This document shows positions 34,264-37,200 of a stretch of 64,000 nucleotides of DNA, piece by piece. Under the pieces are notes generated by a model, which was not told the origin of the DNA, made no database searches, and was given only the letters and a program-made list of their open reading frames with translations. This stretch comes from Mytilus trossulus (Eukaryota), in NCBI RefSeq assembly GCF_036588685.1, contig NC_086379.1:68758001-68822000 (forward strand), read 5' to 3'. The number at the start of each line of letters is the position of its first letter. Within the stretch, counting starts at the first letter, position 1. A program made the position numbers and the translations under genes.

Positions 34264-37200
34264 CTAAAAATAGATTAAGATAAAAATAAACATCCATTCA
34301 CTGAGGTTTAACATGAAGATTTTTAAATATCAGAATTCAGCACAGCAAAAGCAAGATTTTTGAAATTTAAAAAATTCATACAAGAGATTGGAATCAGAAA
34401 ACCAATTTTAATTAATTTTTAAATGATATTCAATACTGAAATTAACAATTTGTCCAAAAATCACATGTAATTTATAACTCAGTACTATTCAAGTCTTTTC
34501 AAGGATGTAAAACATGAAATTTCAAAATAATTATCCCTGTTGAAAATATAAGAACACACAAGGACAGAGCTACTGAAACCAACAAAAATGGTTATTTTGT
34601 AGTTTCTTTCTATTGCTCTTACCGTCCACTGCCGACAGAAGGGAAAGCGATACTTTTCAAATTCTTTTCATCCGCTAATTTAAAAGCATTATGTATTGTC
34701 TTTTCTAATAGTTGTTGGGCATTGTCAGTTTTCCATGTGGGTCCATGACTATGTATTACAAACTTGGCTGGGAAGTTGTGACCTGGGCATATAGCAGCTA
34801 ACAAATAGAAAAGTTGTATTACATCCCTAGCAAAAGCACTATAACAGTATATTTTAATTCTCTAATTAGCAATACATTTACTCAGAAGCAGATATTTGTT
34901 TGATTTTGATTTCAACATTTATTTTTGACCAAAACAAAGTAGTTAATTTTTTTTATCTTAAAACAGATAAAAAAATTTTTTTTTAAATAACACGAAAATG
35001 CAATTGAAGCAAAATATCTGCTGCTGAAGATACAATAACACTGCTAATTACAGAAATTATATGTAAACCATATACCAGATATCTGTCAATCTTTTTATGC
35101 TTTGAAATAAAACAAAGGGCTACACCAATTACTGCAAGATGTGACTGCAGAGTCTAAACAAGGAGAAGCTAATAAGAATAGCATTTTAAAGCAATTTTGT
35201 ATACAGGTACTTTCTTGACAAAGGCAAAAAGTCCCTTAAGGGCATACGATACAGTAACAGGGGAGGTAACCGTAATGACGTTGCTAACGTAGAATGTTAT
35301 TTTCGCGACGTCTAACCATGACATATCGGGAAAAGATGCATTTTCGACTGAGTTTTATCTTTCAAACTGATTTAAATTGAAAACAAGTGCATGGACCCCT
35401 ATTTTTTAAACAACAGTTTGTTTCATTTTGCAGGGAGATTAAGTGGACCGAACTTTCTAAAACTGTAAATAGTGCAATTTTTTTTAATTTTCATAATTAA
35501 TACAGCAAAAAAATACGTTTTTTTCTCAATTCATGACCATTTGATAAATATGACTTATTTTGAATAAAAAATGCATAAATTTTTAGGATACTTGAAAATA
35601 CTGAAATTACAAATTATTTAACAAAAAAAAATGTGTTTAGCTTATTAAACAAAAAAGTTATGGATTTCTTTCGAAAGGAAAAATACGGCCAGAAATCTGA
35701 TCTTTTAGCAAATATACAAAATTTCGACCTCAATTAACTCAAAAAGTAGCACATATGTTTTTTTTACATATTTGATTAAGTCAGGCAAAAATTAACCTAT
35801 ATGGAAATTTTCATCAATCTGTAAATACAGGATCAAAACTGTATCGTATGCCCTTAAATCAAGAGGACAAAGTTAATTCCATCTTATCTGACAGCTACAG
35901 CACCATACCATTAATATAATTTATGAAGCATTAAAAGATTGACAGATATGCATGCAAAAATGACAACCAACAATCCTATGTCATAATGAAAAGTATGTTG
36001 CCTTTAAATTTATGTTATTAAAGCTGATATTTGGGGTAAATACTATCACATCCCAAACTTCTTTACACAAGTCCAAATGCGTCACACAAAAGTTTGAATA
36101 TTTTCCCTCTTGAAGTCAACACAATCATTATGATACAGCAAAACTGGTTGTCATAGAAAGAAACATAAAATAAACGACTTACTTTCCACTACTAATAGAT
36201 GGAATTGCAATAGACTTGATATTTTTTTCATCTGCCAATGCTAAAACATTCTTGGTAGCCTTCTCTAACAATTGTTGTGAATTATTAGCGCCCCATGTTG
36301 GACTATTTACGTGTATGACAAATTTTGCTGGGAAATTATGTCCAGAACAAATGGCAGCTGAAATGATTTAACTAGTTGAGTTACTACCCTACTATAAATA
36401 TGTTTTTATATAAAGTGAATGTTCCATGTATTCAACACAATTTTGCAACTTTAGTAGTATATGAAATTTAACAATATCGATACCAAATTCCTTGTTTAGG
36501 AAAAGCAATACAATCTAGATGAACTTGAAAAGAAATTACAGAGATATAATTTTATGTACAAATAATGATATATCAATTGAAAAAAAACTTAATTGTTGTT
36601 TTTACATATTGATAGTTCTGAAAGGCTTCAAAAGAGGGTTTTAAATCTTTATGTTCTTCCATGCATCATTTTGCTGGATCCTCGTAGTTTAAAAGAGAAT
36701 TAAAATCATCTTCTAAATAATAACTCTGAATAAATCATCACTCAGTTTGAATCAGGATAGAAACTCTTGGCACAGCTTCGCTTGCTATCTGTTTCTTAGC
36801 CTTGTACAAATGAAATTTATATTTTGAGACAAAAAATTCTTATTCTATATTTCACATTTCATTATGTTATGTTATTTTTTGTTCACACTTAGGTACTGTT
36901 TAATTTTGATAATAAATGATTGAGAGTGGAAATCAGTAGCCCTTTTCAAAAAAAAATCTTAAGTGTAAAATTTATTGAAGTCTAAAATATTCCTTAACAA
37001 TTTAACTAAATATTCTTATCATAAGAGTAATTTTAGACTGAAGATTTTTTGTCAAAAGGGCTACAGGAATGTGTCAAAGAAACAAAATGACTGATTCACA
37101 AACAAATAAGAAATTAAGATACATGTATTATTCTTTTTGAAATACCATTTAACTCTCAAGGCCCATAGAATGCTAAGAGCATTCCACCTCTAATATTTTC

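Follow-up and report, generated by a model that had tools for sequence, protein, structure and literature searches.

A duplicated macrodomain exon, probably spliced as a mutually exclusive pair, in the macroH2A gene of Mytilus trossulus and other lophotrochozoans

Results

The macroH2A gene and its duplicated exon

The 64,000-nt stretch of Mytilus trossulus contig NC_086379.1 analysed here (positions 68,758,001 to 68,822,000; hereafter the window, to which all coordinates refer) carries on its minus strand a gene for the histone variant macroH2A, which consists of an N-terminal H2A fold, a basic linker and a C-terminal macro domain. The layout of the gene was established by a six-frame scan of the window and by tblastn of P0184, a transcript-derived protein of 369 residues, against it. 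H2A-fold exons near 43.97, 42.3 and 41.3 kb are followed by a Lys/Ala/Pro-rich linker and then by macro domain exons 4, 5, 6A/6B and 7 (Table 1). P0184 is 100% identical to exon 1 and exon 6A of the window, with 6A corresponding to its residues 258-315, and its cluster includes macroH2A proteins from five Mytilus species. Exons were searched singly, and the whole-protein steps used two database proteins, P0283 and P0285, which match the peptides of window exons 1, 5, 6A/6B and 7 exactly. In these proteins the histone fold was recognised by Pfam Histone (E about 5e-14) and Histone_H2A_C (E 2e-15), and the macro domain by Pfam Macro (E 7e-35 and 4e-33). A scan for bacterial promoters and terminators, which has no bearing on this gene, yielded no hits.

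Between the constitutive exons 5 and 7 lie two versions of one exon, 6A and 6B. An earlier reading of the letters alone (the sequence-only reading) had described them as paralogous exons of 175 nt with equal phases, good splice sites and 19 differences in 59 residues, and the minus-strand sequence and its translations bore this out. A polypyrimidine tract and AG lie upstream of both exons, and GTAAG lies downstream of both. The two peptides align without gaps at 68% amino-acid identity, and nucleotide similarity collapses right at the exon borders. Each exon alone matched positions 47-105 of the 118 positions of Pfam Macro (6A, E 1.7e-17; 6B, E 9.6e-16). The resemblance of 6A and 6B is far beyond chance. 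When the 6A peptide was searched against the whole 1.3-Gb genome, 6A itself (E 1.8e-31), 6B (E 8.4e-20) and one distant macro domain were the only matches. 6A and 6B are the only copies of this exon in the genome, and the macroH2A gene is single-copy.

Exon 6A encodes the motifs HVNSPTWG, KNVL and IPSISSG, and its last codon is completed by exon 7 to give N, so that the junction reads SSGN-AGFPKQ. The corresponding motifs of 6B are HSHGPTWK, NAF and FPSVGSG, with the last codon completed to R and a junction reading GSGR-AGFPKQ. The motif pairs quoted in the sequence-only reading, HVNSPTWG/IPSISSGN and HSHGPTWK/FPSVGSGR, are thus present in the exon translations when the codon shared with exon 7 is included. 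Exon 5 ends in GGT G, which leaves one nucleotide of a split codon, and exon 7 opens with T. Since 175 nt is not a multiple of three, mRNAs containing both exons or neither are frame-shifted. Reading the letters by hand, we found a TAG stop at codon 17 of 6B when 6A was joined to 6B, and a TAA stop after 13 exon 7 codons when exon 5 was joined straight to exon 7. These stops agree with the frame shift that had been predicted for both kinds of mRNA.

Table 1. Features of the macroH2A gene around the exon pair (window coordinates)
Feature	Position	Strand	Details
Exon 4	38135-38224	minus	start of macro domain (GFAPSAEAV...); six-frame scan and tblastn of P0184
Exon 5	37224-37404	minus	constitutive, 181 nt, Asp...GGEVG segment; single-copy, macroH2A1.1-like
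Exon 6A (A-type)	36183-36357	minus	175 nt, in phase 1, out phase 2; tttcag before, gtaagt after
6A-6B intron	34798-36182	minus	1385 nt; 6B acceptor AG 34798-34799, 6A donor GT 36181-36182
Donor-downstream complement	36153-36180 / 34586-34613		12 nt perfect, 28 nt at 75%; inverted-repeat scan
Interspersed element	35236-35857		about 620 bp, perfect 20-nt terminal inverted repeats; in 6A-6B intron
Open segment upstream of 6B	34798-34838	minus	41 nt open in frame; cryptic AG at 34839-34840
Exon 6B (B-type)	34623-34797	minus	175 nt, phases same as 6A; ttgttag before, gtaaga after
Exon 7, coding part	34101-34263	minus	first T completes AAT (Asn, 6A) or CGT (Arg, 6B); stop TAG 34101-34103

Annotated isoforms and transcripts with either exon

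In both M. trossulus and M. californianus, window exon 6A corresponds exactly to RefSeq isoform X1 and 6B to isoform X2, and the peptides of exons 1, 5 and 7 are likewise exact in these isoforms. All 19 differences between the X1 and X2 database isoforms fall in residues 262-316. Further isoform pairs were collected by searching 1.84 billion proteins with 6A, by follow-up searches and by cluster look-ups, and were then compared by global alignment. At least 17 annotated isoform pairs differ inside this exon alone, at 13-27 positions. The bivalve pairs come from Mytilus galloprovincialis/edulis, M. trossulus, M. californianus, Pecten maximus, Argopecten irradians, Mizuhopecten yessoensis, Saccostrea cucullata, Ostrea edulis and Crassostrea virginica. 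Pairs were also found in gastropods (three Haliotis species and Biomphalaria glabrata), in the chiton Liolophura sinensis and in the brachiopod Lingula anatina.

Transcripts with either exon were found as well. The short Mytilus contigs with a full spliced open reading frame among the Logan transcript contigs are A-type (P0184, P0279 and P0280), and such contigs of a related mytilid carry B in P0165 (366 aa) and A in P0294. The M. galloprovincialis cDNA ANA12449.1, reported by Rivera-Casas and colleagues in 2016, is B-type, with one T/S change relative to window 6B. ANA12449.1 represents the same gene in its 6B isoform, one isoform being recorded there as against the two described here. In partial oyster transcripts exon 5 runs straight into A (P0309) or B (P0312). 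The mutually exclusive use of the two exons proposed in the sequence-only reading is supported at the level of RefSeq isoforms, cDNA and transcript contigs.

Layout and age of the pair in other invertebrates

Metagenome contigs were scanned once with an alignment of the exon peptides, which yielded five invertebrate macroH2A loci (L004-L008). In L004, L005, L007 and L008 the A exon precedes the B exon, and each exon is 175 nt long and bounded by AG...GTAAG. The A exons at these loci end in GGAAA/gtaagt and the B exons in GGNCG/gtaag. L005 matches Paralvinella exactly in this exon. The contig of L006, which is heterodont bivalve-like, stops directly after the A exon. Looking for the pair in relatives had been suggested as a check, and both exons were found in molluscs, Lingula and worms with their length and splice sites kept. 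The intron between A and B is 283 nt in L004, 66 nt in L005, 62 nt in L007 and 64 nt in L008, compared with 1385 nt in Mytilus. Much of the length of the Mytilus intron is due to the element of about 620 bp (Table 1), which is present in high copy number: a first look at the genome gave 2375 candidates, and 40 scored copies, spread over many contigs, were 85-88% identical.

An outer inverted pair (35079-35102 / 35926-35949), 96% complementary, flanks this element. One further metagenome contig, L009, has two tandem MacroD-like macro domains that are unrelated to macroH2A and were matched via an NFPAKFVI pattern.

The age of the duplication was examined with trees built on the 59-column exon alignment. 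Lophotrochozoan A and B exons fell on opposite sides of one branch, with a single label change, support of up to 96/93 and agreement of all bootstrap trees. Forcing the molluscan A and B exons into one clade was 37.8 log-likelihood units worse and was rejected by the approximately unbiased (AU) test (p=0.0003), which for the mollusc clade was run on named taxa only. Because a duplication confined to molluscs is rejected, the pair is older than the split between molluscs, brachiopods and annelids, and on these trees the A and B lineages are placed before that split. Holding the Lingula A and B exons as sisters, when tested by itself, was not rejected (p=0.088), and with only 59 columns the AU test does not reject a duplication confined to lophotrochozoans either (p=0.36-0.37). 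Exon identity across phyla is 81% between A exons and 75% between B exons, compared with 68-69% between A and B of one species.

Among the five Mytilus species the 6A exon is identical and 6B shows one residue change. Between the closely related L007 and L008, the introns are 77-84% identical, and the codon changes are 10 synonymous and 0 non-synonymous in the A exon and 5 and 1 in the B exon. Judging from these codon comparisons, both copies are under purifying selection.

Where a single exon is annotated, it is A-like in corals, the hemichordate Saccoglossus, a scorpion and spiders, and B-like in chordates, Pycnogonum and several annelids. In a coral-rooted tree the B clade (96/93) takes in the amphioxus and vertebrate exons. 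This arrangement allows the tentative and, in our estimate, rather unlikely scenario that the A/B pair was already present in the bilaterian ancestor, with chordates having kept only B, and hemichordates and chelicerates only the A-like exon. If it were true, a macrodomain isoform switch would have existed in macroH2A long before the vertebrate 1.1/1.2 switch arose on the neighbouring exon, and the two ancient forms would differ in their handling of ADP-ribose or poly(ADP-ribose) (PAR).

Two further observations concern exon 6 equivalents elsewhere. In the centipede Strigamia maritima, the gene model P0163 contains a full exon 6 equivalent followed by a partial copy (LLGKTVKNCL to GSGR), which hints at a tandem pair in myriapods. 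P0025, P0158 and P0159 of the clam Mercenaria mercenaria, and also P0032, are macro domain paralogues that lack a histone fold, and several of them begin with a long coiled coil. Their labels read PARP14-like or macro-H2A.1-like, and their exon 6 equivalent is A-like (IPSISSGH). By sequence, the clam paralogues look like spin-offs of the macroH2A macrodomain.

Predicted differences between the two macro domains

In every species A and B are told apart by three columns, namely Mytilus positions 274 (V versus C/S), 280 (G versus K/R/S) and 316 (N/S versus R), and positions 276, 291, 295 and 309 separate them nearly completely. In AlphaFold2 models of both isoforms the macro domain had a predicted local distance difference test (pLDDT) score of 83-95 and the same secondary structure. 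The modelled exon 6 span comprises strands 258-262 and 270-275, a helix at 284-301, a strand at 306-310 and the start of a loop at 311-320. Both models superimposed on macroH2A1.1 crystal structures with template modelling (TM) scores of 0.96-0.97 and root mean square deviations of about 1.1-1.3 Å. The structure-model check put forward with the sequence-only reading thus gave a macroH2A1.1-like fold for both isoforms. On these models, 274, 295 and 309 would be co-varying core positions, and 276, 280 and 316 would be loop positions near the cleft. The best matches among solved structures were macroH2A1.1 macrodomains; the B isoform matched human macroH2A1.1 with 262 bits and macroH2A1.2 with 230 bits, and from its sequence the B form is best described as a chordate-like macrodomain.

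The sequence-only reading had taken the splice switch to alter the phosphate-binding loop, and this held in part. Exon 6 contributes just the first residues of the diphosphate loop, and of the loop residues only the last one of the exon, N/S versus R, separates A from B in all species. In the alignment, residue n of Mytilus corresponds to human residue n-1, so that Mytilus Gly315 equals human G314, and this glycine is retained in both forms. In the human protein the G314E mutation abolishes PAR binding (PMC5770377). We did not find a residue-level account of the human Arg315 position in the searchable literature. The Ser in the Mytilus A loop ISSGN is lineage-specific, most A exons having IGSGN. 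The part of the claim that stands is that the exon covers the loop start and that its last residue differs.

Discussion

The sequences and models suggest a simple scheme for the mussel gene. Each mRNA would run from exon 5 to 6A or 6B and on to exon 7, and the products would be two histone variants of 369 residues, identical except for some 59 residues in the core of the macro domain. Mis-spliced mRNAs with both exons or neither would be removed by nonsense-mediated decay (NMD) or would give dead products. Given the long intron that separates the two exons in Mytilus, it would be this frame incompatibility that keeps the pair exclusive there. We consider it highly probable that 6A and 6B are a real, used and mutually exclusive pair. 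Several points weigh against this scheme. The exclusivity is supported by annotation and assembled transcripts, and the RefSeq X1/X2 models are predictions; isoform models from the NCBI pipeline are normally backed by RNA-seq. The NMD of a both-exon mRNA is something we infer, and the stop in a neither-exon mRNA may fall in the last exon, which might let such an mRNA escape NMD. Any functional difference between A and B is a prediction from sequence and models.

The Logan assemblies listed for Mytilus and Crassostrea are mostly A-type, which suggests unequal usage and would suit a gene in which only one exon matters and annotation has picked up a duplicate that is decaying or seldom used. Even in phyla that are far apart, however, both copies still have exactly 175 nt, the same phases and intact splice sites, their changes between the close relatives L007 and L008 are almost purely synonymous, and B-type mRNAs are known from a mussel (ANA12449.1), another mytilid (P0165) and an oyster (P0312). 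The decaying-duplicate idea is already contradicted by this conservation, and we regard it as very improbable. Even less credible is a long isoform of 441 aa, with both exons in frame, as a real product. Gene models of this length exist in M. edulis (CAG2187746; P0282) and M. coruscus (CAC5423510; P0287), where a cryptic acceptor brings 6A and 6B into one frame, and the 41 nt upstream of 6B are open in the window too. Such a protein would have a second strand-strand-helix-strand unit amid a compact fold, and no long-form transcript was seen among the transcript contigs examined. Models outside RefSeq that contain both exons, with junk linkers, were found in M. edulis, M. coruscus, M. gigas, the ark clam Tegillarca and Paralvinella, and the linkers in the merged models of oyster, ark clam and Paralvinella differ from one another, as prediction artefacts would. 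The both-exon gene models are probably annotation artefacts.

How exclusivity is enforced could also be a matter of RNA structure (docking/selector pairing) or of steric hindrance across a very short intron, with the reading frame having no part in it. The sequences that directly follow the two Mytilus donors contain a perfect 12-nt complement, and with an A-B intron of 62-66 nt, as in L005, L007 and L008, splicing from A to B could be inefficient. The donor-downstream pairing is not, however, more stable than that of shuffled sequences (z -1.06, with 16.5% of shuffles as low), and similar pairing was not seen in L004, L005 or L007; a docking-site/selector system was rejected on these grounds. 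Mutually exclusive exons of the Dscam and 14-3-3 xi type have conserved competing intronic complements, for which the mussel pair offers no support. In the alpha-tropomyosin type the intron is too short to splice; at 1385 nt the Mytilus intron excludes steric hindrance in this genus, and many invertebrates splice introns of some 60 nt efficiently. Enforcement by RNA structure or steric hindrance instead of the frame therefore seems to us a poor bet overall, although by its intron length steric hindrance may contribute in the taxa with a 62-66 nt intron (L005, L007, L008).

If the pair worked like vertebrate macroH2A1.1/1.2, one form would bind ADP-ribose and the other would have lost binding. 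The exon does end in the diphosphate loop beside the glycine that matches human G314, where G314E abolishes binding (PMC5770377), this glycine is followed by Arg in all B exons and by Asn or Ser in the A isoforms as spliced, and the first loop Gly is replaced by Ser in Mytilus A. Yet the exon 5 pocket segment (Asp...GGEVG) and the G314-equivalent glycine are present in both forms, the Gly-to-Ser replacement is specific to Mytilus with IGSGN in most A exons, and the models of the two forms fit ADP-ribose-bound macroH2A1.1 equally well. In addition, the A-like exon is the sole annotated form in corals, a hemichordate and spiders, which would be unexpected for a crippled form. An on/off switch of the vertebrate kind thus seems unlikely. 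ADP-ribose binding is probably retained by both forms, and the mussel switch is more likely to adjust affinity, the choice of ligand or the contacts with partners than to turn binding off.

In vertebrates, two alternative homologous exons of MACROH2A1 give rise to macroH2A1.1 and 1.2 (PMC8232725, PMC7300387). The mussel pair is like this system in the gene family and the domain concerned, and in that a histone variant unchanged elsewhere comes with either of two macrodomains. It differs in the segment that is exchanged. The vertebrate pair is the upstream Asp...GGEV pocket segment, the mussel equivalent of which is the constitutive, 1.1-like exon 5, whereas the mussel pair is the next exon, which in vertebrates is constitutive with the same boundaries (the single-exon open reading frames P0010 and P0014 end in GSGR). 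Within all isoform pairs examined the Asp...GGEVG segment of exon 5 is identical, which is not the pattern of a vertebrate-type switch. Since the segment exchanged in vertebrate 1.1/1.2 lies in a constitutive exon here, the lophotrochozoan switch is independent, and the proposal that it acts on a different exon from the vertebrate one was confirmed by the single-copy, 1.1-like exon 5. Judged by exon position, then, the mussel-type pair is a splice switch that is independent of the vertebrate one. Vertebrate 1.2 has lost ADP-ribose binding through the switch; the sequences and models of the mussel forms give no sign of a comparable loss. The two switches also differ in age, in that the mussel-type pair predates the split of molluscs, brachiopods and annelids.

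6A and 6B resemble the tandem duplicated exon substitutions catalogued in human genes (PMC9741552) in that the two exons are homologous neighbours, share length and phase, are ancient and exchange one segment; they differ in the particular gene and clade. A 2025 study has the alternatively spliced macroH2A exon arriving with vertebrates and mammals (PMC12551714). None of the literature that could be searched describes an alternative macroH2A exon in an invertebrate, though one may have been mentioned earlier. The pair is already public as RefSeq isoforms X1/X2 and apparently undescribed in the literature. The pair is real, but it is an ancient lophotrochozoan one that was already annotated as X1/X2, and not a peculiarity of Mytilus.

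In the textbook view, chromatin is linked to the metabolism of nicotinamide adenine dinucleotide and ADP-ribose by macroH2A, whose best-studied feature is the vertebrate splice switch. The second switch, on another exon of the same domain, has kept its exact exon length for more than half a billion years in molluscs, brachiopods and annelids, and it shows that evolution has repeatedly made two macrodomains from one macroH2A gene. It also supplies two natural variants with which to ask what properties of a macrodomain get tuned. Studies of bivalve macroH2A with antibodies, quantitative PCR or expression atlases have so far assumed a single product.

Additional observations

Exon 5 of Mytilus appears to have arisen by the loss of an intron. 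In L004 (9029-9124 + 9381-9467), L006 and L007 an intron following GGEVG splits the exon 5 equivalent, and its position appears to coincide with the 3' border of the exon that is alternative in vertebrates. In Mytilus this intron appears to have been lost, fusing the segment with the next exon.

Upstream in the gene, a 42-nt unit is repeated in 56 copies (91% matches) at 38786-41127 on the minus strand, beginning inside the linker exon. The unit encodes about 14 K/A/P-rich residues and has a donor-like AAG/GTAAAA. P0184 takes the first donor of this array (exon 3 end at 41094) and then continues with exon 4, and in-frame stops are found within the array region at 40575-40577 and 38865-38867. 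Elsewhere in the window, at about 20119-21573, near-identical open reading frames recur roughly every 500 bp in the minus-strand frames, which suggests a tandem repeat array.

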